A stretch of 64,000 nucleotides of DNA from Hyaloraphidium curvatum SAG 235-1 (GCA_025558095.1 JAIVFI010000027.1:62001-126000); one strand, 5' to 3'. Positions 163 through 47,781 are shown, counted from the stretch's first letter. Notes: generated by a model from the sequence alone, not told the origin. Numbers and translations: made by a program.

Positions 163-2274
163 CTACGCCTTCCCCGCGCCCTTCCACGACAGCAGCCCAT
201 CCGCGTCCACGCTGCACCTCTCCTCGATCACCGCCTCCACCCTCTCCCTGAGCCCCACCTTCCCCCTCCCGAAACCCTCGGGCACCCTGTCGCCGAACGG
301 CCTCCGCGTCGCGAGCAGCACGTCCCGCGCCCGCTCCATCGACTTGCGGTCCGCGCGGTTGAAGTACGGGTTCTCGGTGGGCGGGGTGCCCCAGTTCAGG
401 AGGAACCTGCACCGCGCGGGGACGGTCAGCGGAGGGCCGGGCGGGCGGCACGGGCAACGCACCAGTCGACCACCTCCTCCTTGCGGAACGCGTACTCGGG
501 CGCGTCCTTGAAATCCCCCTTGACCACCGCCTCCACGTCCCGCTCCCTCGGCAGAGCGCAGACGAACCGGTGCGGGTACTCGAAGTAGGTCCGCTCCGTC
601 CGGAGCTTGAGCTCGGTGTAGCGCCTGGGCTTGCCCGCCGGGGTGAAGTAGGTCTGCTCGACGTACTTGTCCGTGATGGTGTCGATGGCGCTCAGGGGCG
701 GGGTCCAGGCGGGGTCGGGCTGCTTGGTGATGAGGACGGCGGTGACGCCGGTGGCGAGGTCGGGGGAGTTGTTCTCAAAGTCCTGTGGGCACCGGCCACC
801 CAGTTGCTGTTAACGGCAGCGCGTGCAGACGGAGTCCGGGAGGTACCCACGACGAACTCCCTGCAAAGCCTGAACTCCATCCCAAACACCTCCGCGACGT
901 CCATCTGCTCCCCCTTCCTCGCCGCCCTCAGGGACACCTTCATCGCCGTCGGCGACATCTTCTCCAGCGTCGCCAGCGTCTCGAGCGCGAACGGGGAGCC
1001 GTCCTTGCTCAGACGCTGGAGGATCTCCTCGACGGTGTTGGCGGAGAAGCACGAGTCGATGGTGCGGCGGGCGTCGCCCGAGAGGGACCACGAGAGCCAC
1101 TGCTCCTTGGTCGGCGCCTCGGCTTCCCGAAAGACGGGGCGTCAGCATCGAGCACCGGGGTAGCGGAACGGCCCACCCACCGGCAAACTCCTCCACCACG
1201 CTCTCGACGACCCCGAGGTTGCCCTCCACCTCCCCCAACCTCCTCACCAGCGCCTCCACCCTCGCGCTCGGCACGTAGTGCGTCGCGATGCCCGCGAACA
1301 GGCACTCGATCCCCTTGAGGCGCTTCCCGGTGAGCCCGAGGTAGGTCCCGATCTCGCCGTCCAGGCGCGGGAGGAAGAAGGAGCCGCCGACGTCGGGGAA
1401 GAAGCCGATGGCGGTTTCGGGCATGGCGAAGAGGGTGCGCTCGGTGGCGATGCGGATGGGGGCGTGGACCGAGAGGCCGACGCCACCGCCCACTGTGGGT
1501 TAGGGGCAGGAGCGAGTGAATGGCGGACCAGCGCTCAATCCGACAGCGAAACCCACTTGTGATCCCGTCCATGATGGAAATCACCGGGGTCTCGATGGTC
1601 GCGATCATGTGGTCGAGGATGTATTCCTCGTCGAAGAAGGCGAGCGCCGAGGCCAGGTCGCCCTTCTGGGCGTCGAGCACGACGGTCTTGATGTCGCCGC
1701 CGGCGCAGAAGGCGCGGGCGTCGGGGGCCGAGCAGATGATGATGGTCTTGGCGAGGTCCTGCTGGTTCCATTCCTGGAAGGCGATCGGCGTCAGTGATCT
1801 TCCCCCCAAAATGGGCAGGCAAGGAGGTAGGCGATGGGAGGGAACGCGTCGAAACACCATTCTGGCGGCCCGAAACACGCCATCGACCCCTCCCAGTCCT
1901 CCCCCCACCCCCGAAATGATACCCACGCCGATGAACTTTGCCATCTCGGTGCACATGCCGGTGGACAGCGCGTTCAGCGCCTTCGGCCTGTTGAGGATGA
2001 GCAGGCGCGCCGAGCCCAGCTTGCGCGCCACGACCTCCGGGTCCGTCGGCAGCACGTGCAGCGGTGAGGGCACGTCCTGCGCGGCGGCGGGCGAGGCGTG
2101 GAACATGCGGGACTGGGCGGCGGCGGGCGCGGGGGCGGGCGGGAGGTGCGCGGCTAGCGCGCGCAGGCGGCGGGCGGGCGGCGCGGGCGGCGCGGGCATC
2201 GCGGCCCCGCGGAGGCGCCCGGCGAGTGACGCGGCGCGGACGCGCGGAACCCCGAGGGACGCCGCGCGGATCAT
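163..2274 (-). CDS. EHD3: Mitochondrial 3-hydroxyisobutyryl-CoA hydrolase (HIBCH/Ehd3, crotonase family), about 6 exons
   Basis: Arg/Ala-rich presequence; motifs [35 protein letters not shown] and [17 protein letters not shown], joined across GT-AG introns (e.g. ~1773-1927, ~1493-1557); stop TAG at 163. Confidence 0.92.
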
Positions 2275-2417
2275 CTGCCGCCCTGCGGAATACAGCGGCC
2301 CGGCTTGAAGCGACCAAACCCTTGGCGGTAAACAATCTCAAACAACGGCACGGCGCGTCGAGCTATCCAGCTTCCAAACCCAAAAGCTTGACGGGCCAAG
2401 CTCTCCAGCTACAAGCC

Positions 2418-6810: not shown

Positions 6811-9769
6811 TTACGCATCCAGGAGCCAATCCAGGAGCGACGGGTAGGCATCGCGCCTGGCACCGAGCCCTGCCATCTTCCCCGAAAGCGTCCAGCTGGT
6901 CCGTACGCACAAAGCACACGGACCACCCCTCCCTCCGCATCTTCTTCATCTCCTCCTCGTCGATCCACACCTTGGCGATCCGGCTGACCGCATCCCACTC
7001 GTACGCGCTGACGAGCTGTAACAGCTCGCCCTTGGTGTAGTCCCGCGGGAGCACGATTTCGTCGCGGATCTTGGCGGGCGGCCCCACCGCACGGGCGTTC
7101 CAGAACAGGATCCCAAGCACCTCGGCCCTGGGATTGTGGTGGCTGCCGAAGCCGGCCCGCATGATCTCCCACGCCGTGGTGGGCATGAACGTGGCGTCCA
7201 GCCCCATGCGCAGCTCGATGGGCCGCATCTCGGTCCCGCGCAGGTTGACGGGAAGCCCCAATGCGGGGATCCAGCTAGCGGCCGCGGCGCGGATGTCGGC
7301 CCGGAAAGGGGTCAGATCGAAGCTGCGCGCTGGCACGGGGTCCGACAGCGACAGCGGCGTGGGGCTTTCTTCGGGCCAGCGAGCCTGCAGCTCGGTCCGC
7401 TGCCCCGCCGCCACGACGAGGTCGACGATCGGCACCAGCAAATGCTTCGGGTATCCGATCTCCAGCAGCCCTTCGACGGCGCGGAACCAAGCGTGGATCG
7501 AGTTGGGGCAGCACTCGCGGAAGCCCTGTCTGGACTCGCGCATCGGCGGCGCTAGGATCGAGAGGAGCAGACGGGACAGCCATGTCTTGACGTCCGCGGG
7601 GGATGCGAGGTCGGCGGGGGCGAGGGGGTCCAATGCGGCGTACTTCAAGTCGTCGTATAGTTCCCCGGAAAGATGGCGGGTGCCGAGCAGCTTCGGGTAC
7701 ATGGAGTCGTCCTGGATGAGCGTCGTGGCGTTCAGGGCGTGTGCGCGGCTTTTCCAGTAGCTGTTGTTGAGGAGCACGTTGTACCTGAAGTAAGCTTTGG
7801 GGTGTCGCTTGAGGGTGCGAGCTGCGCACAGGTGGGCCACAAGACTCGAGGTGTAGTCGGGAACCTGATTTGAAGGGGATCAGCGACATTTCGACTGCCA
7901 ACGACAGACAAGACCCACGTTGCTCATGAAGATCCGGTCGAAGGAAATGCCCCCGAGCCTGCACTGCTCCAGCGTCTGCGAAAGGTCTCCAAGGACAAAC
8001 GACACCCTCCAGACGTTGCGGCATGCCGACGCGGCCTCGGCGACCTGCTTGAACCAGTGCATTGCCCAACCGAGCAGCCCGTCCGCCCGATCTTCGGGCG
8101 GCGGCGCGACGATCTAGCACATGTAGAGGCTCCTGACCGCGCTGGCGGGGTTCCAATCGAGCCCCTTGTCCTCGATCTCGGATTCCCATAACACGGGGTT
8201 CGAGACCCAGTGCTTCAGCACGAGATCGAGGGCTTGCTGCCGCGCGGCTTCGACCGCAACGACATTGAACCCGTCCGTGTCGAGGAGGTCGAGGAGCGCG
8301 ATGTGGTACGTCTTGTCCAGCTCCCGTTTGATCAGGGAAATCGGCTCGATAAGCTCCTTCGGCTCGAAGCGCAAGAGGTTCCAAGTTGGAATCAGGAACC
8401 CGCTCATGGGCTTCTGCAGAACGCAGCGGAACTCGGCTCCGACGCCGGGGAGGTCCTCAGCGAGGCAGCTCACGTACATCGCCTCGGCGATGGACCCGAA
8501 CTTTCGCCGCCTTTTCTCCCTCCATCGTGTCCCCCGGAGCTGACGCAAAGAGCTTGTCGAAGAAGCTGGCCGGGAACTCGCTGAACCGTTCCTGGAACAA
8601 CTTGGCCTCGTGCTCGATGCCTTTCTGGCGCTGCGCCTCGTAGGCGATCTTGGCGGGGGCGCCCAAGTACGTGGTGTTGGTGACCACGCTGTGCTCACGC
8701 AGACCGTCTCGGCGGAACGGATCCGGGAACGGTCCGACCAGTAGTCCCAGAGCCTCGCCAGCTCATCCGAATTCCACATGGCCTCGTCCACGAACAAGCC
8801 CGTGTAATCTTCGAGTTCCTCGGTGTCCAGGCCCCGCACGTGCTGGATCAGGGCCACGAGCTGGTCGTAGATATGTCCGGGCATCACGGCCCCGACGAAG
8901 AGGTAGGAAGCCAGGGCCGCCAGGTTTTAAGGCTACGAGTTCGTCCCCCGGCTCGAGCCAGCCCAGACGGCGGAGAATCCTCAGCATGAGCGCGAGCCTT
9001 GCGAGGACGGGGTACTTCACGTCGTTGAGTACAAAGTGTACCTTAGGGTCCTCGTACGAGTCGGGATCCTCTACGAACCTTGACATGTCCAGCAGCGAGA
9101 GCAGCATGTGCCGCGCATCGTTGCAGCCGCCGAAAAACAGCTCGAACGGCTCTTCATCGGGGCCCGGCACGGGGCATCGAGATTCGGGATCGTCCGAGAA
9201 AGGGTCAAAGCCGCGAGGTTCTCCCTCGTCGCGGTTCGGGACCTTGAGGTCGTCGCCGGCAAAGGCCGAGAAAGCTCTGTCGTGGCCAACGGTGTAGAGC
9301 TCCCTGAAGGTAGTATCTTCTTGCAGTCGAAACCAGGGCTTATCGACCAGGAGTTTCCTCTGCAGTTCGGCCGGTTTGCCGGGAGACACCGATTCGAGAG
9401 CACGCGCGTCGGACGCGAGCTTGGATGCCTCCGCGCCAGAGAGGGAGGAAGCGAGGTCCAGGCAGGCCCGAAAGTCCCCGGAAAAGAACAGCGCTTTGGC
9501 CCAGCGCAACGCTTTCTTGGTCCTGAGCGGGGAGAGATCCTGCCCCGCTTTGCTTCCTCGTCAATGAGGTCTGCCACCTGTCGCGCAGTTTCAGCCGCTT
9601 CCTTGTACCGTCCGGACTCGAACAAGGCCGCAACCGCGTTGGAAAGGTACACCGCACTCGCGTTCCGGGCGAAGGCCTCGCGGTACTTTGCGAGGGCCTC
9701 CTCGAGGTGCCTCGCGGCGTAAAGCACGTTGCCCTCGGCCTTTAGCTTTTCCGCGGTCGTCGCCATCAT
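6811..9769 (-). pseudogene. TPR + DUF4470-family protein disrupted by about 5 single-base frameshifts and an in-frame stop
   Basis: TPR AEKLKAEGNVLY..YLSNAVAALFESGRY; DUF4470-type motifs YTVGHD, LFFGGCNDARH and FDRIFMSN|VPDYT (intron ~7866-7917). Frame changes at ~9548, ~8923, ~8702, ~8519 and ~6898; TAG at 8114-8116. Confidence 0.75.
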
Positions 9770-17120: not shown

Positions 17121-17413
17121 GAATGACTGTACGTGCTCGATTGACAGCGAGCGGCCATAACGATCCGGGCCTCACGACGTGAACGAGCTGTCGACTTTTG
17201 AGTCTCCTGAAATCCATCCATCTCGACTATTGAGCAGCATAGAGTATCCGGAGAAACGCTCGTGCTCCGGATCCGGGAGCCGGAACAAGTTTAAGGGGGG
17301 CAGGGCTCTATCTTTCGTGTAAACTGGTGTTTGATGAACAAGTTTAGGCGCCTCGCGACTTGCCCCTGCTGACTGAGCGCCGCGATCCAGTCACCGCCCG
17401 ACCGCACCCCGCC

Positions 17414-19388
17414 ATGCTCCGCGCGGCGCTCTCGTCCGCGCTGCGGCGACCGGGCACGCAGCCGGCCGTGCGGACTGCGGCTGCCCCGGCGCCCCTGCGG
17501 ACGCTGCGGCAGCCCCACCCGGCGCCGATGCCCGTGGCGCTCCGGCCGTGGCCCGCCCTCGCCGGTGCGCCGCGCTTCCGCGCGATGTCTCAGCAGGCCG
17601 CGCCGGCCGCGGGCGGGCAGCAGCAGCAGAAGGCGCGGCCGAAGCACGGCCTGCCGTTCCGTGCGGCGCGGGGATTCCTCGGCGCCGCCACCGCCGCGGG
17701 CCTCGCATACTGGTTCTACCTGTTCAAGCTGCAGGAGGAGCCGGCTGTCATGGCGCCCGACGCGCCAGACCCGCCGCCGGAGGTGTTCGTCCACCCGTAC
17801 TCGCTCAAGCCGTGGTGGTGGCGGTTCCTCTTCTCCGTCAGGCGGTCGCTATACCTGGCATGGGTCTTTTTCCCCGTCGGCGTGAGGCTCTTTTTCTCGT
17901 CGCTCTTTCCGAAATCGGAGTATTTCCGGGAGGCCCTCGTGGAGTCGTTCCTGCGGGCCATGGAGAAGGGCGGGTGCTGCTTCATGAAGCTGGGCCAGTG
18001 GATCTCGATGCGGCCGGACCTGTTCCCGCCCGACATCATCGCCGCCATGGCGACGCTCCGGACGGGCGTGCCGCCACACCCGATCGAGCACACGCGCCGG
18101 GAGATCCGGGACAGCTTCGGCCGCGACCTCGAGGACATCTTCGAGTCGTTCGAGGAGAAGCCCTCCTCGAGCGGCACCGTGGCGCAGGTCCACCGCGCCG
18201 TGCTCCGCAACGAAAAGATCGGCGGCACGGAGCAGGTGGCCGTCAAGGTCCGCCACCCCAACGCCATCGCGGAATCCTTCGTGGACCTGGACCTCATCTT
18301 CCTCTTCGTCGACACCTTCCTGCCCACCACCTACGCGCTGCCGTGCTCGCAGGACGAGCTGGCCCGGATCATCCAGCAGCAGCTCGATTTCCGCTGGGAG
18401 GCCTACAACCTGTCGGTCTTTGCCCGCAACTTCCACGCCGAGCTCAGCTCGGGCCTGATCCACTTCCCCCGCGTCACCAAATCCCTCGTCTCCGACTCTG
18501 TGCTCGTCGAATCGTGGGCCGAGGGCGACACCATCGAGACCATGTTCTCGGAGATCCACTCGTACGACGGCTCGTGGGCCAACGCGCGCAACCGGACCCT
18601 GGGCGACCGCTTCTCCGCCGCCGCGCGCGAGAAGAAGAAGCAGCTCGCCCGCCTGCTGTTCGACATCAACGCCAAGATGTTTTTGCGCGACAATATGGCC
18701 CACTCGGACATGCACGGCGGCAACCTCATCTTCTCGCCCGTCCACGGGCAGGTGACGGTGATCGACGCGGGCCTCGTGGCCACGCTGGACCCGGACGCGT
18801 ACAACGCCTTCGGCGACTTCATGCGCGGGCTGTGCGCCGGGAACGTGGACACCATCACCGAAAAGCTGCTCGAGTTCAACGTCTCGAGCTCGCCGGTCGA
18901 CGAGGGCGAGTTCCGCGCGTCGGTGCAGCGCCTGGTGGACCAGTGGAAGGCCTCGGCCACGTCGACGGCGCGGGACGAGACCGGCGCGCGGAAACCCTCG
19001 ACGCAGCCGGGCGTGGCGGAGGAGTTCGAGGAAGGGTCGTCGCCCGCCCTGGGCGACCTCGTGGGGAGCCTTCTGATCAACCTGCAAAAGTTCCGGATGA
19101 AGCTCCGCGGCGACGTGGCCGCGAGCATCATGACCATCTCGATCGCCGAGGGGCTGATCCTGCAGCTGGATCCGGATTTCGACGTCGTGTTTTCGGCGCT
19201 GCCCTACTTTGTCAAGTACAGGGTGGGTTTCTCGCGTGGGGTGAGGTTGTGACGGAGCTGACGCTTTCGACCAGGGATGGGAAAGCGCCAAGGCGGCGTG
19301 GGAAGGGACCAAGAAGAACAAACCGGCGGAGAAGAAGGCGGTGGTGGAGAGCGTCGCGGAGGGGAACGCCGTAGCCAAAGCGGCTTGA
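17414..19388 (+). CDS. Mitochondrial ABC1/UbiB atypical kinase (ADCK2/Cqd1-like), one 3' intron
   Basis: Presequence; FMKLGQWISMRPDLFP (KxGQ), SSGTVAQVHRA, VAVKVRHP, HSDMHGGN and IDAGLV; intron ~19222-19274; stop TGA at 19388. Confidence 0.9.
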
Positions 19389-34478: not shown

Positions 34479-37022
34479 ATGGCGTCCCCGCTCCGGACCG
34501 CTTTCGGGGGTTCCTTCCGCTACGAAACCGGGATGCTGCTGTGCAAAAGGACGCTACGGACGTCTGCCGTGGCGCTGCCGGCGTGGGCCGTGGCTAGGAG
34601 GCCGTCCGGCGCCCACATTCCTGTCAGCCCGTTCGTGCTGCCAGCAATTGGCCGCCGACACGCCCACGCCGCGGCCACCGACGCGGTGCTCCTCGACGTC
34701 GGCGGCATGAAGTGCGCCGGCTGCGCCGCCAACGTAAAGAAGGCGCTCGCCGCCGACGACCGCGTGGCGTCGGCGACCGTCAACCTTCTGACGCACACCG
34801 CGGCCGTCCGACTCAAGGGCGGCACCGCCGACGCCGCATCGGCGCTCGCCAAACTGCTCACGGCCCGCGGCTACCCGGCGACGGTACGGAAGCCGGACGA
34901 CGACCCGTTCCTCGCCCCCGCCGAATCCTCCCCCGAAGCGGACCGACGCAACCGCCGGGACCTCGCCCTCGCCTGGCTGCTTGCCGGCACCGTCGGCCTG
35001 CACCACGCCGGCCACCTGCTCTCCGCCCTGGGCTTCCCCTCCCTCGCCCATTCCCCACTCCTGCACGCCCTGGGCACACCCCTCGTCTCCGGGGCCGTCG
35101 GGCTCGCCGCGCTGCTCGGCCCCGGCCGCACCATCCTCCTCTCGGGCTTCCGCGCGCTCCGCCGCCGCGAGCCGGACATGGACTCCCTCGTCGCGCTCGG
35201 AACGGGCGGCAGCTTCCTCGCCGGCGCCGCGTCGATGCTGGCCCCCGCGGGGTCGCCCTTGGCGGGGCTGGCCGGGGACGCGCCGTCGTTCCTTGGGGAG
35301 CCGGCGATGCTTCTCGCGGCGGTGCTGCTCGGCCGCGCTTTGGAATCCCGCGCCCGCGCGCGTGCCGCGGCCGACCTCGGCTCCTTGGCCGCGCTCGTGC
35401 CCGCCCGCGCGAGGATCGTGCTCGACCCCGCGGATCCGAGCGCGGTGGTCGACGTTCCTGCGGGGGAGGTCCGCGAGGGTGATGCGGTGCGCGTGCTACC
35501 CGGGGAACGCATACCCGTCGACGGCATTGTGCTGTCTGGCAAGGGCTCTGCGGACGAATCGGTGCTCACCGGCGAACCCGCGGCGGTACCCAAACCCCCC
35601 GGTGCCAAGGTGTCCGCGGGCACGGTGGCCTGGGGCGCACCGATGGACGTCAGAGCGGAGAGGGCGGGCAGGGCGACGCAGCTGGCCGGGATCGCGAGGC
35701 TCGTGAGGGAAGCGCAGGCGAGGGAGGCGCCGGTCCAACGGCTGGCGGATTGGGCGGCGGGGAGGTTCTGCGCGGGGGTGATGGCTGCCGCGGCGGCGAC
35801 GTTCGGGTTCTGGAGCACGCTCGGCGCGGCGTGGTTCCCGGCCGCCGCCGGGGGCGCCGCGCTTTCGGGCCCGGCGCTGGCGACGGCGGCAAAGCTCGCG
35901 ATCGGGGTGCTCGTCGTCGCGTGCCCGTGCGCGCTGGGGCTGGCGACGCCCGCGGCGGTGCTGGTGGCGTCGGGGGCGGCGGCGAGGAGGGGTTTGCTGT
36001 TGCGGGGGGGAGGGGAGGCTGTGGAGAGGTTGGGGGGTGTGGATGCGGTGGCGCTGGACAAGACGGGGACGCTGACGGAGGGGAGGCTGGCGGTCGTGCG
36101 GATCGAGGCGGTGGGGCACGTGCGGGAGGAGGAGATGCTGGCTCTCGCGGCGGCCGCGGAGTCGACGACCAAGCACCCGCTCGCCGAGGCCATTGTGGCG
36201 GCAGCGCGGGACAGAGGCTTGGACGTGCCGGCCGCGATCCACGCCGAGGCGTCGACCGAGACGGGCGCGGGGCTCGCAGCTTCCATCAACCGCGGTGGGG
36301 AGGTGGCCGAGGTGCTCGTCGGCAGGCGGGATTGGGTGCTTTCCAAGCTCGGGATCGCTGATGAGGGACGCGGGCAAGTCGGCGAGCAGGACGACGTGGG
36401 ACACACCGAGGTCTTTGTGGCCGCGGCCGGCCGCCCCCTCGGCACCATCTTCCTCGCGGACCGGCTCCGCAGCGACGCGGCATCGACCGTCGCGGCCCTC
36501 CGCGCCATGGGCATCCGCCTCGCCATGCTCTCTGGCGACCGCCCCGCCGCCGCCCTCGCAGTTGGCACTGCCGCCGGTCTACTCCCCCATGAAATCACCG
36601 GCGGCCTCACCCCCGACGGCAAGCTCCGCGCTATCGAGTCATTGCGCTTCCAAGGCCTCAAGGTGGCCATGGTCGGGGATGGGGCCAACGACGCCCCCGC
36701 GTTGGCCGCCGCGGACGTCGGGATCGCGCTCCGCGGCGGGCTGGACGCGGCGGGGAGCGCGGCGGACGTGGTGCTCGGGGACAGGCTGGGCCAGGTGGCC
36801 GAGGCGGTGGTGCTGGGGCGCAAGACGATGGGCACGATCCGGGGCAATTTGGCGTGGGCGCTGGGGTACAACCTGGTCGGGATTCCCGTGGCGGCGGGGG
36901 CGCTGCTGCCGGCGTACGGCGTGGTGCTGCCGCCGAGCGTCGCGGGGGGTTTCATGGCGGCGTCGTCGCTGGCCGTGATGGCGAACAGCCTGCTTCTCAA
37001 GTGGAGGTTGGGGGGACGCTGA
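34479..37022 (+). CDS. Cu(+)-transporting P1B-type ATPase, PAA1/PAA2/CtaA-like, intronless
   Basis: Single MBD GMKCAGC; LTGEP, VACPCALGLATP, DKTGTLT, HP, MVGDGANDAPALA, YN and MAASS. Confidence 0.95.
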   Translation: MASPLRTAFGGSFRYETGMLLCKRTLRTSAVALPAWAVARRPSGAHIPVSPFVLPAIGRRHAHAAATDAVLLDVGGMKCAGCAANVKKALAADDRVASATVNLLTHTAAVRLKGGTADAASALAKLLTARGYPATVRKPDDDPFLAPAESSPEADRRNRRDLALAWLLAGTVGLHHAGHLLSALGFPSLAHSPLLHALGTPLVSGAVGLAALLGPGRTILLSGFRALRRREPDMDSLVALGTGGSFLAGAASMLAPAGSPLAGLAGDAPSFLGEPAMLLAAVLLGRALESRARARAAADLGSLAALVPARARIVLDPADPSAVVDVPAGEVREGDAVRVLPGERIPVDGIVLSGKGSADESVLTGEPAAVPKPPGAKVSAGTVAWGAPMDVRAERAGRATQLAGIARLVREAQAREAPVQRLADWAAGRFCAGVMAAAAATFGFWSTLGAAWFPAAAGGAALSGPALATAAKLAIGVLVVACPCALGLATPAAVLVASGAAARRGLLLRGGGEAVERLGGVDAVALDKTGTLTEGRLAVVRIEAVGHVREEEMLALAAAAESTTKHPLAEAIVAAARDRGLDVPAAIHAEASTETGAGLAASINRGGEVAEVLVGRRDWVLSKLGIADEGRGQVGEQDDVGHTEVFVAAAGRPLGTIFLADRLRSDAASTVAALRAMGIRLAMLSGDRPAAALAVGTAAGLLPHEITGGLTPDGKLRAIESLRFQGLKVAMVGDGANDAPALAAADVGIALRGGLDAAGSAADVVLGDRLGQVAEAVVLGRKTMGTIRGNLAWALGYNLVGIPVAAGALLPAYGVVLPPSVAGGFMAASSLAVMANSLLLKWRLGGR

Positions 37023-38545: not shown

Positions 38546-38620
38546 CACCCGCCGCCGCGCCGTTACCGCGGCCTAGTACTCGTCTGCATGACGCAGATGG
38601 TCGTGATCACCACGATCGCA
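38546..38620 (-). pseudogene. About 75-bp remnant of the 3' end (M4 helix and stop) of a pLGIC paralog
   Basis: ctgcatgacgcagatggtcgt(g/a)atcaccacgatcgca and the flanking accgcggcctag are shared with 40943-40998; encodes AIVVITTICVMQ. Confidence 0.8.
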
Positions 38621-38873: not shown

Positions 38874-40376
38874 TCAAGCCGGGCACACGGACTGTATCGT
38901 CACGCCCACCCCCGCGCCCCGCAGGATCCCGAACAGACCCACCCCCAGCGTCAGCCCCGTCGCCACCAGCCCCCTGACCACGCCCCAATCCACCACGAAC
39001 CCGAACATCCGCGCCAGATCCGCCCTTGCAGCGGCGTCGAACCGAGCCAGCACCTCGGCGTGGGCCCTCCACCGCGGCGCGTCGTGGTGGTCCGGCTCTC
39101 GGGCGGCGCACAGTGAGAGCTGGGTCCGGGCGCGTGAATACAGCTCCGCGATTCGGGAGACGCCGGCGTTGGCGGAGACCACCGTCACGACGACGCGCAG
39201 GAAGAAGAACACGCTGATGGCGAGTGTGCCCAGGACGTAACCAGGGAGGCAGCCGGCCGCGACCATGGAGACGCAGCCGACCAGCACGACCATCCCGACC
39301 ATGGCGGCACTGACGGAGGACGAGGTGGCTACGTTGTGGCCGAGGGTGCGCCACGCAGGTAGAAGGGAGGAGTGCAGGGGGACGTAGGGCTCTTCCTTGG
39401 GCCAGGGGATGTTTTGGGCGTCGTCCAGGGAGAGGTAGCACCTGCGAAGCAGGTCCGAGAGGGCGAGAGAAACAGCCCGAGAGCGAAGGCGGGCCTGCAG
39501 GGCGAGGAGCGCGGGGTCGCTCGATAATGCGTCCATGGCGATGCTGCAAATGGAAAAGGTGTGGTAGGCGAGCACCCAGGCAGCCAGGAGAGCACGCCAT
39601 GGGGAGTTCCACGTAATGCTGCCAAAGTAGACCATAGCGGTCCAGAACTGGAGCGGAGCCCAGATAAATAAGCCAGATGAAGCATGGAGGAAAACCGAAG
39701 TGGCCTGGAGCCACGCCGACCGGCGGACGAGAGATCCGGAGCATGATTCCGCGGGGCAGGTGCACGCGTCGTCTCCAGGGTCGTGCCTTACCAGCGGGTC
39801 TGTGCCGCCGCCCAAGCCGAGCTCGGTTGCGTCCCCGCCGGGCAACCGCAGTTGCCCTTCGCTTCCACAGAGTTGTCTCCACCTCGCGTAGCACGCGAAC
39901 GCGTGCTGATCGGGAAACTTGAGCAGTGCATGAGCGGCATTTGTTGTCATACGGGCCAGGAAGGCAGAGGGTAGCTCGAGAGCGAGGAAGACGGTTAGGC
40001 CAGTCACGATTCCCCTCGTGTTGAAGTCGCCCGAGTCCATTGCGACGGGCCACAGCGTGCAGGCAAAGAGTGCGAAACGGGGTGCCGAGTATAGCAAGAA
40101 GCGGGCGATTACGTTGCCATTGATCCCCGGGTTGTTCCACTCGACCGCCAGCAGCGCGCGGTGGACGGGCGAGCCCGCGAACGCGCGTGCCAGCCCGTCC
40201 CGGGTCAGCGACGACGCCTCACGCGCTTCCTTTGCGGGGTCGCTTTCAGCGAACCCGGGCGGGGCCCCGGTAGGGGCCGCAGAGGGCCTGGTGGCCCCCG
40301 GGAGCAGGCAGAGCCACGCGGCCGCGCTCAGGAACGGGCCGGCGGCCACCCGATCCGCGTGGTTGGTGGGGAACAT
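38874..40376 (-). CDS. 7-TM membrane protein, GRL/7TM-ion-channel-like family (intact, intronless, ~500 aa)
   Basis: Seven hydrophobic segments; loop motif LVRHDPGDDACTCPAESCSG; GCLPGY between TM5 and TM6; C-terminus ARMFGFVVDWGVVRGLVATGLTLGVGLFGILRG..SVCPA. Confidence 0.8.
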   Translation of the reverse strand: MFPTNHADRVAAGPFLSAAAWLCLLPGATRPSAAPTGAPPGFAESDPAKEAREASSLTRDGLARAFAGSPVHRALLAVEWNNPGINGNVIARFLLYSAPRFALFACTLWPVAMDSGDFNTRGIVTGLTVFLALELPSAFLARMTTNAAHALLKFPDQHAFACYARWRQLCGSEGQLRLPGGDATELGLGGGTDPLVRHDPGDDACTCPAESCSGSLVRRSAWLQATSVFLHASSGLFIWAPLQFWTAMVYFGSITWNSPWRALLAAWVLAYHTFSICSIAMDALSSDPALLALQARLRSRAVSLALSDLLRRCYLSLDDAQNIPWPKEEPYVPLHSSLLPAWRTLGHNVATSSSVSAAMVGMVVLVGCVSMVAAGCLPGYVLGTLAISVFFFLRVVVTVVSANAGVSRIAELYSRARTQLSLCAAREPDHHDAPRWRAHAEVLARFDAAARADLARMFGFVVDWGVVRGLVATGLTLGVGLFGILRGAGVGVTIQSVCPA

Positions 40377-40949
40377 GGCCGTCGCGTTGTTGGGCAATGA
40401 AGCGGATGTGAGGCCCGGCATTTATTTCTAGCGGAGTGTGGAGCATGCAGTGTTGCCTCGGGATCCAGGGGATTCCCGCCCCAGGCCGTGGCTCGTTACC
40501 CCCGCATCGCCCTCGGAGTCACTAGCTCGGATGCTAGTGAGGTCGATCGTAGTTTGATTATTCTCTCCTGATTCAAATAGCAATTCACGTTTGTCGGGCT
40601 CCGGCCGCCGCGCGAAATGGCCGAGTCCGCTCAACAGCAACCCTCTTACCGCCTCAACGGGCACCCTCTGCACGTCTCCGTGACCCCAAACCCGTCCGGC
40701 ACCGGACATAGCACTGCGGGGCGCGTTCACCAGCGTCATTGGCTGCGTCGCGATGCCCGGCTTGCTCGGAAACCGGGCCGCACCCGTGCCCATCCACGTA
40801 GCTCTCGCACGGAGCCTCCGATCCTCCAATCAGGCCCCTGCGTGCAGTTGCACTCCGTTCGGGGGCCCCGGGAGGCCGAGGGTGCAAACGGCCGGGCCTG
40901 TCGCTTCCGCAGGGCGCAACGACCCGCCACCGCAACGGCGCACCGCGGC

Positions 40950-42143
40950 CTAGGTCCTCGACTGCATGACGCAGATGGTCGTAATCACCACGATCGCAAC
41001 GACGAACTCGGTGGCCAGCGCCACGGTGTTCCAGAACCGGATGCTCTTGATGACCTCCTTCTCCTTGACCTTGTTCTTCCTGAGCTCCGCCTTGCGCGTG
41101 CGCTTCTCGTCCTCGTCCATGAGCTCCTCCTCCTCCCTGTGCGCTTCCTTCTCGTCCGCGCGGAACTCGAGGATCCGGTTGTTGTCCCAGACCACGAGAC
41201 CGAAGGTGGAGATGATCAGGAGGTAGCAGAAGACGTAGATCTCGTCCATCAGCGTGAGCCCCGAGATGACGAGGTTGGTTTGTTGCAGAAAGACGGCCGT
41301 GAGGAGCGCGGTGGCGCTCATGGCCGTGCGCACCTCGACGTACTTGGGGTGCAGCACGAGCGAGAACCACGAGGAGATGACGACGAGGCAGAGCGGGAGG
41401 AGCAGCCGCCAGATGAAGAAGTTCTGCCCGCGCTCGATGACCAGCGAGAAGCGCACGGCCGAGTACTCCTCGTCCTCGGGCGCGCCCGTGACCCCGAAGT
41501 TGCTCTCGTAGTCGTGGATCATGGTCTCGGCCTGCAGGTCCACGAGGTTCCAGCCGGGGACCACCAGGAGCGCGTCCAGCCCCGATTCGGCAAAGTCGGG
41601 GACGTACACGATGTGGTCCCGCTGGTGCACCGAATCCTCGACGTTGAGCGTGAGCCGCTGCTGGTCCAGCGGGAAGTTGCGCAGGTCGAAAGGCTGGTAC
41701 ATCAGGCCCTGGATGTGCAGCTCCTGCACGAGCATGCCGTCGGCGGCGACCGTGGGCTGCTCCGTGACCTTCTGCACGGTAAAGTCGACGTCCTGGACGC
41801 CGTTGTTGATCTCGAGCGATTTTATCGGGTCGTAGTCCGTCCCGTTGGGCCAGCGGAACCAGAGGTAGCCCGTGAGCCAGTACGTGTTTTTCGAAGTGTC
41901 GAGGTCGTAGGCGTTCATGGCGTAGAACCCGACCGAGACGACGGTCGCGTTACCCGGCGGGGCGGTCTCGGGGCGGTAGTAGCCCGGGACGGGGGCGCGC
42001 CCGGATTGGGTGCGGCGCGGGCGGCACGCGGCGCACCGCGACGCCCCGTTGAAGCGCGCGAGGCCGGCGGCGGCCGCGGGGAGCAGGCTGAGCGCGGCGA
42101 CGGCGAGGCCGAGCAGCAGGAGCGCGGGGAGGCGGCGGCGCAT
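40950..42143 (-). CDS. Pentameric ligand-gated ion channel subunit, Cys-less Pro-loop type (GLIC/ELIC-like), intronless
   Basis: Signal peptide; VSVGFY..YDLD..YLWFRW; Pro-loop FDLRNFPLDQQRL; VPGW; pre-M1 IER and M1 LLLP; M2 EVRTAMSATALLT; M3 LTLMD; M4. Confidence 0.92.
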   Translation of the reverse strand: MRRRLPALLLLGLAVAALSLLPAAAAGLARFNGASRCAACRPRRTQSGRAPVPGYYRPETAPPGNATVVSVGFYAMNAYDLDTSKNTYWLTGYLWFRWPNGTDYDPIKSLEINNGVQDVDFTVQKVTEQPTVAADGMLVQELHIQGLMYQPFDLRNFPLDQQRLTLNVEDSVHQRDHIVYVPDFAESGLDALLVVPGWNLVDLQAETMIHDYESNFGVTGAPEDEEYSAVRFSLVIERGQNFFIWRLLLPLCLVVISSWFSLVLHPKYVEVRTAMSATALLTAVFLQQTNLVISGLTLMDEIYVFCYLLIISTFGLVVWDNNRILEFRADEKEAHREEEELMDEDEKRTRKAELRKNKVKEKEVIKSIRFWNTVALATEFVVAIVVITTICVMQSRT

Positions 42144-42462: not shown

Positions 42463-43839
42463 TTACCCCGCCGCCCCTCCCACCTGCCCAGCGAGCGGCA
42501 CCAAAGTGCCGGCTGCGATGACCACCGCGAGCGCCAGCAGGGCGCGGAACGCCTCCGGGCGGTTGGACGCCTTGCGGCGCAGGACGGCGGCGGCGGCGAG
42601 GCACTGCGCGAGAAGCACGAGGAGGGGGAGGAAAAGGCCGCTGTCGGCGGCGATCGCGCCGAGGGCAGGAAAGGATGCGCCCTGGGCGGAGGCGTCGCCC
42701 CCTGCGGCATGGCCCGCAAGTTCCGAACCCCCTGCGGCCGGACTGCCGCCGGCAAGCCGCACCACCTGCTCCCAATGCGCGTCCAGCTTCTCCCGCGCGG
42801 CCCGCGGCGGTCCCCTCCCCTTCTCCCCAAGCAACCCCGGGAGAGCCTCCAGCGCCCTCCCCCAGCTTCCGACCACCTCGTCCCGCCTGCCCATCTGCCC
42901 CGCCTGCCCCTCGAACTTGTGCAGGTACGGCACGGCGACGAGGCGCGCGGGGACACCGTACGCGGCGGCGGTGATGTGCCCGTGCAGCGACGAGGTGAGG
43001 ACGGCGGAGGAAGAGGCGATCGCGGCCGCGATGTCCTCGAGCGCGGGGGGGTCGTCGAAGGGGATGGTGCGGAGGGGGGCGGCGGCGTGAATGGCGCGCA
43101 CGGTGTGGTGGTCGCCATGGCATCGGCCCAGAGCGAGGAGGATCGCGCGGGCGCCCGAGGCGGCGAGCGCCGCGTCGAGGGCGACGGCGAAGGAGGTCGC
43201 GTTCGTACCGTGCAGGCTCCGCTCCTTGGCGTGCACGGCGACGATCGGTCCGTCGCCGACGAGCCCGAGCCGCCCGCGGATGGCCTCCCAGCGCGCCGCC
43301 AGCCTTGCTGCGGGCCAGACCAGGGGCAGGTCCAGCGCCGTGTCGGGCATCACCTGCGGCCGGATCCCGGCCCATTTCTCGAACGCGTCGGCACTCCCGG
43401 CATCGCGCACCGCCAGCCTCGCCGCGGCATCCGCCGTGCGGCGCACCCAATCCGCAGGCGGGCCCGTCCCGGCGCCGTCGGGTGCCAGCACGCCCGGCGA
43501 GTTCCAAGCCACGGGCAGCCCCGTCCGCGCCGCCATCTCCGTCGCGCCGGCCCACAGGTCCCGGTACGCCCGCGGGCCGTAGCCCGGCAGCCCGAAATCC
43601 AGCGCGTGCACGATGTTGCCGCCGCCGACCAGCACCGCCGCCAGCCCCTCCCGCGGGCGGAACCCGGCCTGCGCCTCCGGGCGCGGCGCGTCGTCGTACC
43701 CCGCGCGGCGGCCGGTGGGCGACACCGCGACGGGGGCGATGCCGTGCGGCGCGAGCCGCGCCGCGGCGACGAGGGGGAACAGCAAATCCCCGTAGTTCTC
43801 GACGTCGAAGGTGCCGAAGATGGCCACGGTGCGGGGCAT
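42463..43839 (-). CDS. Polysaccharide pyruvyltransferase family protein with two C-terminal hydrophobic helices, intronless
   Basis: FGTFDVENYGDLLFP, VLVGGGNIV, VAWNSPG, LAVRDAGS, MPDTA and TSSLHGHITAAAYGVP. Confidence 0.88.
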   Translation of the reverse strand: MPRTVAIFGTFDVENYGDLLFPLVAAARLAPHGIAPVAVSPTGRRAGYDDAPRPEAQAGFRPREGLAAVLVGGGNIVHALDFGLPGYGPRAYRDLWAGATEMAARTGLPVAWNSPGVLAPDGAGTGPPADWVRRTADAAARLAVRDAGSADAFEKWAGIRPQVMPDTALDLPLVWPAARLAARWEAIRGRLGLVGDGPIVAVHAKERSLHGTNATSFAVALDAALAASGARAILLALGRCHGDHHTVRAIHAAAPLRTIPFDDPPALEDIAAAIASSSAVLTSSLHGHITAAAYGVPARLVAVPYLHKFEGQAGQMGRRDEVVGSWGRALEALPGLLGEKGRGPPRAAREKLDAHWEQVVRLAGGSPAAGGSELAGHAAGGDASAQGASFPALGAIAADSGLFLPLLVLLAQCLAAAAVLRRKASNRPEAFRALLALAVVIAAGTLVPLAGQVGGAAG

Positions 43840-44288
43840 CGCGGGCGCCGCGCTGCAATCACGAGGTCCGGCGGCGCGATCCGTGCCGGATGGCGCAAGA
43901 GAAGTGACGAGGGAGGAGGAGTCCCGCCGTCCCGCCGCCCGAACCCCCTGGCTGGGCCCGATGCGTCCCTCGACTCGATCCCCTGAAATTGAGCCCGCCG
44001 GACTTGGGGCCGGCAGACGTTTCCGTAGCACCACGGCATCGGTGCATCGGATCCGCACGTGCCGTGCGGTAGGCGGTTGCCGGTGTGGTATCGCAAGGGG
44101 CACCGGAAGGACACGCCGCGGGAGGATCCGCTCACGGAAACCCGAGCCTCCGAGAACGACACTGCCTTCAGGCTCATCCGGATTGACGGTCCTGCCGCGG
44201 TCCGAGCCAGGCTTCCGTCGATCATGCCGTCGCCATGGGGCCCAAGCTCGACCCAAGGGATTCGGCATCCGCCTTCAATAGCTCTCAA

Positions 44289-45763
44289 ATGTCGTTCACT
44301 CCGGACGAGTGGTTCCTCTTGGTGCCGCTACCGCCTCAGGGCAACGTGTTTACCTCAGGTTCGCCCGACGACGGCGCGGCCGAGGCCCGCGCGGCCCGCC
44401 CTCTGACTCGCGCCGAGCTCCTCCGCTGGACGCGCGGCAGCGGCCTGCTGCACGCGCTGCTGCGCGCGCAATTGGAGCTCGGCCCGTGGACGGGGCGCGT
44501 GCTCCTGCGCATGTTGCTCGTGATCGCCGTGTCGATGGTGCTGCTCGTGCCGCTGTGGACGCTCAACGCGGGGCGCTTCGGCTTCCGGCAGCTTGTGGCC
44601 GGCACCGTCGCCGCCGCGCTGTTCAATGCCCTGACGCTGGCCACGTGGGCGATCGCCGCCACCTTCCGGGGCTCCTATCTGCAGTGGAAGCAGGCACCCG
44701 CCGGCCCCGCAACCCGAGATCCCGCCGCGGCGGACGCCTGCGCTCACCCGTTCGCCCCGCTGGCGCTCTGGGCCCGGCTCGCTTCCTCCGAATCGGCCCC
44801 CTCCGACTTGCTCAAGGCCCCTGACCGCGATCCGACGCGCACAGCTGCCCTCCTGGAGCACAGGGACGACGACCCGCTCTGCCCCTGCCCCAACCCCGCG
44901 TGTTCCGGCACCGCCCTGGCGCGGGCCGCCGCCGTGCGGCTGCTCGAGATGCTCGCGCGGATCGCCGTGTCCGCCGCATTCACCGTCTGCGTTGCCTGGA
45001 CGCCCATGGTCACCTTTGCCGCCGATTTCTGGACGAGCGGCTGGGCGGCGGCGGGGGCATTGCTCGGTGCGTTCCCCCCGGAGCCGTTGCTGCCGCCGTG
45101 CTTGACCCGCCCGCCCGCCAGTCGTCTCGTTCGTCAACGCCGTCGTGGTGAGCAGCATCGGCCGCTTCGGCACCAACGTCGCCGTCCTCCGCCTCGCGCT
45201 CCGCGTGCAGGCACCGCGCCGCCACCTCCGCCCTGCGCCGGCTGCTCGACCGGCTTCGGGCCGGTGCGCCGCCTCCCCACGGGGAGGAGGAACTCTACGT
45301 CCGGCTCCACGCCGCGCTGCGGACCACCTGGGAGAAGCAGTTCACCGCCGCGCTGATGACCTCGGGCGGCTACCTCGCCGGCGCCGTCTTTTCGTGCTTC
45401 CTCGCCATCGTCATCAACCTGGTGCATGCGTCACCCGCATCCCATTCTTGTTCCTTGCTGACGACGTTCGCAGATCGGCGGCTCCTGCGTCCCCGCCTAC
45501 ATCCTCTTCCACCTCCTCGGCACCCTCCTCATCCTCCTCATCGACCTGGTCAACATCGCCGCCTCCATAGGCCAGCTGGCGCAGGTGGTCGCGCTGTACG
45601 GCCTCGCGCGGCAGGAACTCCTGTTCACCGTGGCGATCGTGCTCTGGGGTGGGTCGCCGCGTTCCGCACGCCCCCCCAGGGAGGTGCTGACGCTCTGTTT
45701 GGCAGGATCATGCGGGGGTCGGGGATATTCGTCACGCCGGACGTCGCCTGCCCGTTCTATTGA
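44289..45763 (+). pseudogene. 7-TM GRL-like family member with three introns, a frameshift and an internal deletion
   Basis: Loop motif LLEHRDDDPLCPCPNPACSG; WTP; GSCVPAY..LIDL; ends ACPFY*. Introns ~45067-45121, ~45422-45473 and ~45649-45705; +1 shift at ~45211; IL3/TM7a missing at ~45620. Confidence 0.72.
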
Positions 45764-46791
45764 CCCGCTGCTGCGGTAAAAGAATCCCCGCCATCTTCCC
45801 GCGGCCCTCCCCTCTTCTCGACGTACACGAACCTCCCCACCGCCCCGTCGTCCTGGCCCAGGCTGTACGTCGCGAGCCCCAATCCGTCCGCGGCCTCGTG
45901 CAGCCGCTTCCTCTCCTTCGAGTAGAGCCCGTGCACGGGGCCAAAGAGCTTCAGGTTTCCGTCGGCGAGGAAGCCGGACAGCAGGCGGGCGTAGTCCTCG
46001 GCCGTCGTCCTTTTCGCGAATGCGGACCGCTCGAAGTTGGGCAAATCGGAGTCGCGGGGGTCCCGCAGAGTCTCGATGACGCTGTCCAGGTCGCGCCGTT
46101 GGGGGCGGAGGACAAAATCGGAAGGGCGGGAGTTGCCGGTCTCGCGGGCCTCGCGGAGCTGCGCACCAGTCAGCGTCGCGGGAAGGAGAGCCGTGACAGC
46201 GAAACGCACCTTGGAAACCGGCACGGATTCCTCCGCCATACTCTCAAGAAGCATCTCCCACCTTTCCGCCACCGTCGTCCTCGGCATCGCCACCCGCGGG
46301 AACGGCCCCGGATCCTGCCCCAGGCACACCCGCAGCGCGGCGTCCAGAACGCGCAGCCAGTCCTTCCGAGCTTCGAGCTGCCGCAGCAGCATGAATCTGC
46401 CCGATTCGAACTCGCCCAGTGCGTCGAGCACGTCGAGCGGGGCCGAGGGGGGGCGGGAGGGGAAGCGGGTCATGGTTGGGCCGGCGGGTTCGTCGGCGAG
46501 GCGTTCGCGCACGCGGCGGAGGACGCGCATGAACGAGGCGCGGGAGCAGCCTTTCAGGTCGTCTTGCGTCACGGCGCCCGCAAAGGCCGATTCGTCGAGC
46601 GGCACGCCGCGGTAGCCGGGCAGCGCGTCCGCGACGCATTCCGGCGCGTCCGCCGTCGCGGCGCGCCACATCGGCGAAAGGTCCGCCGGGAGGCCCTCCC
46701 GCTCGACAAAGATTTCAAAGGCCACCGCAGAACGGAGACAATGGGCCAGGTGCGGGGCCACCAGCTCCGCCAGCAGCGCGAGGCGATCCAT
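45757..46791 (-). CDS. Hypothetical protein with C-terminal R3H domain
   Basis: LYSKERKRLHEAADGLGLATYSLG..GRFVYVEK fits the R-x3-H pattern. Confidence 0.72.
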   Translation of the reverse strand: MDRLALLAELVAPHLAHCLRSAVAFEIFVEREGLPADLSPMWRAATADAPECVADALPGYRGVPLDESAFAGAVTQDDLKGCSRASFMRVLRRVRERLADEPAGPTMTRFPSRPPSAPLDVLDALGEFESGRFMLLRQLEARKDWLRVLDAALRVCLGQDPGPFPRVAMPRTTVAERWEMLLESMAEESVPVSKVRFAVTALLPATLTGAQLREARETGNSRPSDFVLRPQRRDLDSVIETLRDPRDSDLPNFERSAFAKRTTAEDYARLLSGFLADGNLKLFGPVHGLYSKERKRLHEAADGLGLATYSLGQDDGAVGRFVYVEKRGGPREDGGDSFTAAAGQ

Positions 46792-46905
46792 GTTGTTTAC
46801 CGAAGTCAAGGGATTTGGCCGCGCAAATTCCTGCCCATCGATCCGCGCGCGTTTCGCGAACTGCCAGGCCTCCCATCCGCCTCATTGCCCGGCAACGCCA
46901 CGGCG

Positions 46906-47781
46906 ATGTCTGGGGCCGACCAGGTCGATCGGGTGGCCGCCGGCCCGTTCCTCAGCGCGACCGCGTGGCTCTGCCTTCTCCCCGGGGCCACCAAGCCCTC
47001 TGCGGCCCCCGAAGGCGCGCCGCCCGGGTTCGCGGAAACCGACCCCGCGAAGGAAGCACGTGAGGCATTGCCGCTGACCCGGGCCGAGCTCGCACGCGCG
47101 TTCGCGGGCTCGCCCGTCCACCGCGCGCTGCTGGCGGTTGAGGGGCACAACCCGGGGATCAACGGCAACATTTTCGTCCGCTTCGTTACTTATTCGGCAC
47201 CCCGTGTCGTGCTCTTCGCCTGCACGCTGTGGCCCGTCGCCGTGGACTCGGGCGAGTTCATCAAGAGGGGAATCGTGACTGGCTTTAGCCTGTACACCGC
47301 TTTCGAGCTCGCATTCGCCATCCTGGCCCCCGTGACGACAAAGGCCACGCAAGCATTGCGACATGTTCCGGACGAGCATCCTTTTGCGTGCTATGCAAGG
47401 TGGAGGCAGCTCTACGAGGAGGGGGCAGGGCAACCGTCGTGCCCTACTGCGGACGGAACCGAACTCGGGCCTGGCGGCGGCACAGATCCCCTCGTGCGGC
47501 ACGACCCTCTGGATGACACGTGCACATGCCCCGCGGCGGCATGCTCCCGGTCCCTGGTCGACCGCTCGCCCGACGCGCCGCGGTGGAGGGCCCACGCCGA
47601 GGTGCTGGCGCGCTTCGAAGCTGCGGCGCGGGCGGATCTGGCGCGGATGTTCGGGTTCGCGGTGGATTGGGGCGTGGTCAGGGGGCTGCTGGCGACGGGG
47701 CTGACGCTGGGGGTGGGTCTGTTCGGGATCCTGCGGGGCGCGGGGGTGGGCGTGACGATACAGTCCGTGTGCCCGGCGTGA
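46906..47781 (+). pseudogene. Inverted paralog of 38874-40376 with an in-frame ~627-nt internal deletion (291 aa ORF)
   Basis: Near-identical N- and C-termini (DRVAAGPFLSA.AWLCLLPGAT; MFGF.VDWGVVRGL..SVCPA); the junction SLVDRS/PDAPRW at ~47568 removes TM3-TM6. Confidence 0.85.

Follow-up and report, generated by a model that had tools for sequence, protein, structure and literature searches.

A Cys-less pentameric ligand-gated ion channel gene, probably of bacterial origin, in the early-diverging fungus Hyaloraphidium curvatum

The stretch of DNA analysed here (hereafter the window) comprises 64,000 nucleotides of Hyaloraphidium curvatum SAG 235-1 (GCA_025558095.1, JAIVFI010000027.1:62001-126000) and carries, at 40950-42143 on the minus strand, a gene that sequence comparison and structural modelling confirm as encoding a predicted subunit of a Cys-less ligand-gated ion channel of the pentameric kind (pLGIC). 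Taken as a whole, the analysis suggests that this is probably a genuine nuclear fungal gene, whose family was transferred once from a bacterium, duplicated and was then refitted to the eukaryotic cell. pLGICs have been described as near-universal except in fungi and land plants, and none was found in Fungi (PMC4795631); their protist distribution was restated in PMC11085791, and no later report of a fungal member was found in the searchable literature.

The minus-strand frame is open from 42344, and its sole ATG, at 42143, starts a complete open reading frame (ORF). The G+C content at the three codon positions (GC1 0.63, GC2 0.42 and GC3 0.91) was compared with that of an ABC1 kinase ORF at 17348-19252 (0.65, 0.47 and 0.93, respectively). 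Because its GC3 pattern matches that of the other coding ORFs in the window, the pLGIC ORF is regarded as coding and as written in the genome's own codon style, and it was confirmed to lie far beyond a chance ORF. The gene and the features of its translation are as follows.

40950-42143, minus strand: complete intronless coding sequence of a Cys-less pLGIC subunit of 397 amino acids, stop codon at 40950-40952 (ORF translation, phmmer and Foldseek)
42063-42143, minus strand: predicted signal-peptide-like N-terminus, residues 1-27, with a basic start, a hydrophobic core and an Ala-rich end (inferred from the translation)
41430-41981, minus strand: extracellular beta-sandwich domain, residues 55-238, up to the pre-M1 Arg238 (strands of the AlphaFold2 (AF2) model and alignment to the GLIC and ELIC extracellular domains)
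41943-41951, minus strand: sequon NAT, residues 65-67, immediately ahead of strand beta1 (sequence)
41838-41846, minus strand: second sequon NGT, residues 100-102 (sequence)
41664-41675, minus strand: Pro-loop motif FPLD, residues 157-160, without a Cys pair (translation and alignment)
41355-41426, minus strand: M1 helix, residues 240-263, with the conserved Pro250 (AF2 helix 240-263)
41271-41339, minus strand: pore-lining M2 helix, residues 269-291, with Glu270 at -2', Arg272 at 0', Ser276 at 4', Thr278 at 6' and Leu281 at 9' (AF2 helix and column comparison)
41190-41255, minus strand: M3 helix, residues 297-318, modelled onward into the cytoplasm to residue 336 (AF2 helix 297-336)
41028-41189, minus strand: inserted intracellular domain, residues 319-372, 54 amino acids (AF2 model; alignment with bacterial relatives and orthologues)
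40965-41027, minus strand: M4 helix, residues 373-393 (AF2 helix 344-396; alignment to bacterial M4)

The first-pass annotation of this DNA had claimed a complete 397-residue ORF at these positions, which the frame, ATG, stop codon and codon bias bear out. The signal-like N-terminus, the NAT and NGT sequons and the FPLD motif lacking flanking Cys that it listed were all located at their translated positions, as were the pre-M1 Arg238, the M1 Pro250 and the M2 residues E-2', R0', T6' and L9', and the alignment agreed with its statement that the M2-M3 loop of the window protein contains no Pro. It had also described a highly charged M3-M4 loop of about 45 residues; the charge is as described (16 acidic and 15 basic residues, 57% of the segment), and the length was corrected by the alignment to 54 residues (319-372).

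Assignment to the pLGIC superfamily, likewise proposed at that stage, is upheld by both sequence searches and the predicted fold. phmmer searches against all PDB chains gave 232 matches to pLGIC chains, led by GLIC chimeras (E 2.7e-11) and ELIC (E of about 1e-10 to 1e-9), which align over residues 65-323. An AF2 model built on a 20-sequence alignment (A1) has a mean predicted local distance difference test score (pLDDT) of 81.4, with strands over residues 55-238 followed by helices at 240-263, 269-291, 297-336 and 344-396; the pLDDT is mostly 86-97 in the beta-sandwich strands and 77-90 in the intracellular insert. Foldseek matched this model to GLIC, ELIC, GluCl and GlyR with E values of about 1e-18 to 1e-16 (best 1.5e-18) and a probability of 1.0. 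The window protein thus combines, in its model and translation, an extracellular beta-sandwich with a four-helix transmembrane domain, the F/Y-P-x-D Pro-loop, the pre-M1 Arg and the M1 Pro, together with the M2 pore pattern of a basic 0' (Arg272), a polar 6' (Thr278) and a hydrophobic 9' residue (Leu281). Pro158, Arg238, Pro250, Arg272, Leu280 and Leu281 are invariant in alignment A1, and Asp160 is nearly so. As no Cys of a Cys-x13-Cys loop is present on either side of FPLD, the protein was not filed as a strict (animal) Cys-loop receptor.

Among solved structures, GLIC of Gloeobacter violaceus and ELIC of Dickeya/Erwinia are the best matches in both sequence and fold. They share with the window protein the Cys-less Pro-loop, the beta-sandwich and four transmembrane helices, the pre-M1 Arg and the M1 Pro, and GLIC, which is itself cation-selective, also has an acidic -2' residue. 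However, identity in structural alignments is only about 15-20%, the linker of GLIC and ELIC at the place of the 54-residue fungal insert is very short, and the window gene belongs to another bacterial subfamily and lies in a eukaryotic genome. With the Pfam models, the window protein scored 17.5 bits to PF02931 (Neur_chan_LBD), under the gathering cut-off of 26, and gave no match to PF02932 (Neur_chan_memb). Two relatives from bacteria, P0012 and L023, likewise scored under the Pfam cut-offs, as did the fungal paralogues; the models under-reach for the whole subfamily and annotation therefore misses the family.

The assembly consists of 31.9 Mb in 55 contigs, and the window represents C27:62001-126000 on a contig of about 608 kb. 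The genome carries eukaryotic 18S genes and 74 matches to the fungal-specific transcription-factor domain (Fungal_trans), and searches for light-harvesting (LHC) and RuBisCO small subunit (RbcS) genes found none in it. These observations support a non-photosynthetic fungus as host. H. curvatum is an early-diverging fungus and not a dikaryon; the fungal host assumed in the first-pass annotation agrees with the 18S genes, the Fungal_trans matches and the intron-bearing paralogues described below. A colourless green alga (for example a Prototheca-like one of high GC) was considered as host and dropped on the lack of LHC and RbcS and on the Fungal_trans count; searches for Tic110 and HET gave no match anywhere, in the controls either, and count for neither side. 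The five 18S rRNA genes on contig C1 (34318-36115, 81263-83060, 112954-114751, 180912-182709 and 260152-261949) are irregularly spaced, about 32-79 kb apart, and form no tight tandem array.

Searching the genome with the window protein recovered five paralogues with 35-41% identity, on contigs C13, C16, C15, C12 and C31, which with the window copy make six family genes. Spliced models of the paralogues were assembled from their loci for the alignments and trees. Their gene structures are given below.

C16 paralogue: one 59-nucleotide intron, GTTCGT ... CTGAC ... CAG
C13 paralogue: one intron, GTGGGT ... TAG
C12 paralogue: one intron, GTGCGT ... CTGAC ... CAG
C31 paralogue: two introns
C15 paralogue: no intron
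Window copy: no intron

The introns of the C16, C13, C12 and C31 genes are canonical GT-AG introns with GTNNGT donors, and a CTGAY branch-like motif is present in four of the five. Two public gene models, P0015 and P0060, equal the C31 and C12 copies, respectively, and a few library matches, all with a long M3-M4 segment, are non-bacterial. Further relatives were found on contigs from a Logan run (L016 and L115, SRR26194948) and a JGI metagenome (L017 and L022, 3300043314). On all four contigs a prokaryotic gene caller yields fragmented, Pfam-less genes; the pLGIC homologues on L016 and L017 are broken by introns (one in L016), and a squalene epoxidase on L022 is 76% identical to the copy in the host genome. 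The orthologue of the window gene lies on L016, with about 50% identity overall and a charged intracellular segment that aligns throughout, and the charged M3-M4 insert is kept in both orthologues, L016 and L017. Pairwise comparison with the L016 orthologue revealed no counterpart of the NGT sequon at residues 100-102, and the window and the orthologue contigs show no synteny other than the pLGIC. On L115, an ionotropic-glutamate-receptor-like gene (PF00060, Lig_chan; 7405-9450, minus strand) directly adjoins the pLGIC family member.

The ratio of nonsynonymous to synonymous substitution rates (dN/dS, NG86 method) is about 0.26 between the window gene and its L016 orthologue, with saturated dS, and 0.47 between the C13 and C16 paralogues, for which codon bias probably depresses dS. 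The value against the L016 orthologue indicates purifying selection on the window gene.

Bacterial contamination or a chimeric assembly appears extremely improbable. Several features would fit contaminating DNA: the window gene is intronless and finds its nearest named relatives among bacteria, the neighbouring pyruvyltransferase ORF and a single-ORF copper ATPase are bacterial in style, and GC rises to 0.72-0.75 in stretches beside the gene. However, the host contig extends over about 608 kb, the GC3 of the gene is like that of the other genes in the window, four paralogues on other contigs contain spliceosomal introns, the intracellular insert is found only in eukaryotes and is shared with an intron-bearing orthologue, and identity to any bacterium is no higher than 48%.

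The bacterial relatives come from two sources: phmmer run exhaustively against 1.84 billion representative proteins, and a genome scan, with a six-sequence alignment as query, in which each species of bacteria and archaea was represented by one genome. The protein search gave 2578 matches, 75 of them at E <=1e-30, the best full-length ones being 40-46% identical to the window protein. For three full-length matches, P0012, P0002 and P0004, the context was checked; their contigs carry gal/ara operons, two-component systems and RuvABC and are clearly bacterial. The genome scan produced 322 relatives, topped by freshwater metagenome-assembled genomes (MAGs) with 42-48% identity that belong to Acidimicrobiia and other Actinomycetota, Chloroflexota and Desulfamplus.

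Trees were calculated with FastTree (208 rows), with quick IQ-TREE (81 rows) and with a careful IQ-TREE analysis of 45 rows under LG+C20+F+G4 with posterior mean site frequencies (PMSF). All agree on one eukaryotic clade. In the 45-row tree its ten sequences group with an ultrafast bootstrap of 91 and an approximate likelihood ratio (SH-aLRT) support of 90, nested in a clade supported at 100/99. The rest of that clade consists of nine MAG sequences of Actinomycetota and two proteins without a label, among them P0012, from a bacterial contig. Next outward are Chloroflexota, Thermodesulfobacteriota, Bacteroidota and Bacillota. As a broad bacterial radiation surrounds a single, derived eukaryotic clade, the direction of transfer is read as from bacterium to fungus. 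The horizontal acquisition suggested by the first-pass annotation thus gains support from relatives of 40-48% identity on bacterial contigs and from the nesting in the Actinomycetota clade. Within the eukaryotic clade at least four subfamilies can be distinguished, two of which hold sequences from more than one source; since these two mix sequences of different sources, the duplications predate the splits between the sources.

Vertical inheritance would require that an ancestral eukaryotic Cys-less pLGIC was kept in fungi of early divergence, with its likeness to bacterial proteins due to slow evolution or to transfer from a eukaryote to bacteria. Cys-less pLGICs are indeed scattered across protists (PMC4795631), by language-model features the clusters of Chlorophyta, Haptophyta and diatoms reach scores about equal to those of bacterial clusters, and the animal-like pLGIC family of the same genome, discussed below, may be vertical. 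Against this, every close full-length relative with a checked context is bacterial, and Chloroflexota, Thermodesulfobacteriota and Bacteroidota in turn surround the Actinomycetota clade that holds the eukaryotes. In addition, two derived states, the long M3-M4 insert and the missing Pro at M2 4', are confined to the eukaryotic clade, and the genome search with the window protein did not pick up the GlyR-like genes. We therefore consider this explanation very unlikely. The Cys-less pLGICs that Jaiteh, Taly and Henin (2016, PMC4795631) surveyed in unicellular eukaryotes resemble the fungal family in lacking the Cys-loop disulfide and in their sparse distribution, but the fungal family is bacterial by phylogeny and, within the sampling, lies outside any eukaryote-wide clade.

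With transfer from a bacterium as the preferred origin, comparison of the two sides of the event delineates what has been kept and what has changed. The window protein belongs to the Actinomycetota-type subfamily, given its place in the 100/99 clade and the motifs common to loop C and M2. The members from freshwater Actinomycetota, Chloroflexota and other bacteria (for example L023, L026-L028 and P0012) are 40-48% identical to it over the whole core and share the loop-C motif H-D-Y-x-x-N-F-G and an M2 core motif of about ten residues; a W-D-N motif after M3 is common to the window protein, P0012 and P0013. The loop-C motif and the acidic -2' residue are kept in eukaryotic and bacterial members alike. 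Unlike the fungal proteins, the bacterial ones carry a Pro at position 4' of M2; their M2-M3 loop is longer and in most cases contains a Pro, their linker between M3 and M4 has 19-27 residues, and they have neither a sequon ahead of beta1 nor introns.

These differences are consistent across the alignment. The M3-M4 linker measures 19-27 residues in the 34 bacterial rows that reach M4 (another row is cut short) versus 54-177 residues in the eukaryotic sequences, inserted at the same site, in keeping with the earlier suggestion that the channel has gained its own intracellular domain. Position M2 4' is Pro in 33 of 35 bacterial rows and Ser, Cys or Gly in all ten eukaryotic sequences. In the eukaryotic sequences the M2-M3 loop is shortened by 1-4 residues (by four in the window protein relative to bacterial relatives) and has lost its usual Pro, except in three members with a Pro at a shifted position. 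Of the nine eukaryotic members covering the site immediately ahead of beta1, six carry an N-x-S/T sequon there, versus none of the 33 bacterial rows covering it, which supports the adaptation to the secretory pathway that had been put forward for this protein.

In the AF2 model the insert is predicted as a helical hairpin, an extension of M3 at one end and joined to M4 at the other, and the continuous helix 344-396 is similar to that of animal receptors. Animal Cys-loop receptors (nAChR, 5-HT3, GlyR and GABA-A) are alike in fold, in the long M3-M4 domain and in a helix running into M4, but the window protein has no Cys-loop, and its intracellular domain would be non-homologous to theirs and gained separately after the transfer. 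We give slightly less than even weight to the tentative proposal that a transferred bacterial pLGIC independently evolved a structured, charged M3-M4 domain whose helix continues into M4, like that of animal receptors, together with a small receptor repertoire.

Combining these results, it is proposed that the family entered the fungal lineage once, from a bacterium related to freshwater Actinomycetota, and that this transfer would be older than the split from at least two other eukaryotic sources. Duplication into at least four subfamilies would have led to the six genes of the host genome, and fitting to the eukaryotic cell may have involved introns in four of the five paralogues, the pre-beta1 sequon, loss of the M2 4' and M2-M3 Pro residues, and the charged helical insert. 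The subunit would then enter the secretory pathway and be glycosylated, as its signal-like N-terminus and sequon suggest, and form homo-pentamers or hetero-pentamers with its paralogues. With the beta-sandwich domain facing outward, a small extracellular ligand may bind at the subunit interface, where the loop-C motif common to bacteria is found, and open a cation-selective pore with an acidic -2' ring, Thr at 6' and a Leu gate at 9'. Cation selectivity is suggested because the acidic -2' residue is conserved, as in GLIC. Such a channel may play a role in sensing the chemical surroundings.

Several points weigh against this proposal. The support for eukaryotic monophyly is good and not decisive, with values of 91/90 and two changes needed in 10% of the bootstrap trees. 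The exact donor is uncertain, as supports within the Actinomycetota clade are weak (38-47), and non-fungal eukaryotic pLGICs are present in the trees only as unlabelled library matches. The case for cation selectivity and for gating by a ligand comes from residues only, and the shortened, Pro-less M2-M3 loop could mean that the coupling of binding to gating is altered or lost. Pentamer formation drew no support from any test and is a proposal; a two-copy complex prediction for residues 55-397 scored 0.02, which counts neither for nor against a pentamer.

The limited monophyly support would also fit at least two independent bacterial transfers behind different fungal subfamilies, as would the very long branch (about 2 changes per site) and deviant composition of the C12/C15 subfamily. 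This alternative is nevertheless unlikely, as every tree recovers one eukaryotic clade, and all ten eukaryotic sequences lack the M2 4' Pro and have a short M2-M3 loop and an M3-M4 insertion at the same site, derived states that bacteria lack or seldom show. Similarly, the truncated M2-M3 loop, four residues shorter than in bacteria and without the conserved Pro, could belong to a real but non-canonical or decaying gene that is unexpressed, acts in an internal membrane or has lost ligand gating, and a nearby orphan fragment of the 3' end shows local rearrangement. To this we assign little probability, given the intact frame, the strong codon bias, a dN/dS of about 0.26 against an orthologue in another species, the conservation of all pore and interface residues and the retention of the same loop architecture in the orthologue. 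The fragment in question is the following.

38547-38620, minus strand: orphan 74-nucleotide copy of 40922-40998, which spans the final codons of the gene, its stop and the first part of the 3' flank (blastn with the gene as query and the window as target)

It has the orientation of the gene, lies beyond the next gene with 86% identity over 77 alignment columns, and may be a relic of a local duplication.

The window gene is no lone channel in an otherwise pLGIC-free organism, because the genome also carries an animal-like family. This second family comprises about nine genes recognised by Pfam (Neur_chan_LBD, 57-88 bits), at the following loci (L103-L114 set).

C6: 45168-46004, 47131-47961, 861776-862591 and 863219-864055
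C39: 459632-460393
C1: 280041-280802 and 281617-282360
C37: 166117-166948 and 167882-168935

The genes are paired on C6, C1 and C37 and single on C39, and among solved structures they match subunits of the glycine and GABA-A receptors best (E of about 1e-22). Two copies were read: L109 has W-T-P-D-I, F-P-F-D and only the first Cys of the Cys-loop, and L110 has no Cys in the Cys-loop region. An animal-like pLGIC set in a fungus may be more surprising than a bacterial-derived one. A third, divergent pLGIC-like gene occurs singly at C4:70162-70893 (L008, ORF 1264-2391, minus strand); its 375-residue product has no obvious signal peptide, an F-P-F-D Pro-loop and a P-K-T-P M2-M3 loop, scores 28.0-30.4 bits with Neur_chan_memb against a cut-off of 28.1 and is 23% identical to the window protein. 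This fungus has three pLGIC lineages, and the window gene is in the bacterial-derived one.

Apart from the ABC1 kinase, the window also encodes an ABC transporter (ABC_tran and ABC-2 membrane domains) and a major facilitator superfamily (MFS) transporter. The ORF directly upstream of the pLGIC gene (42463-44268, minus strand) has a polysaccharide pyruvyl transferase domain (E 8e-15), and no stretch of the window is richer in GC than the one in which it sits (0.745); it is an enzyme of bacterial style beside a bacterial-derived channel. The large flanking ORFs at 38874-40421 (minus strand) and 45760-47781 (plus strand) are of coding-type composition and have no Pfam match. A heavy-metal P1B-type ATPase at 34479-37022 (plus strand; HMA, E1-E2_ATPase and Hydrolase domains) is a single uninterrupted ORF of 847 residues with a GC3 of 0.89. 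As a bacterial relative of the pLGIC also adjoins an ATPase, co-transfer of the channel with the copper ATPase was considered and rejected, the two ATPases being only 31% identical, a generic level.

On this evidence, at least one early-diverging fungal lineage has pLGICs, and one set of them, invisible to Pfam-based annotation, is probably derived from bacteria. With the bacterial parent subfamily still sampled and the clear fungal differences few, the family would offer a clean before-and-after comparison of what a prokaryotic channel requires to function in a eukaryotic cell, and it may supply structural studies with a eukaryotic pLGIC that is compact and possibly homomeric. If the proposal is true, it would amount to a natural replicate of the experiment on why eukaryotic, and not prokaryotic, pLGICs carry intracellular domains, and a non-motile planktonic fungus would possess bacterial-derived chemosensory channels beside animal-like pLGICs.

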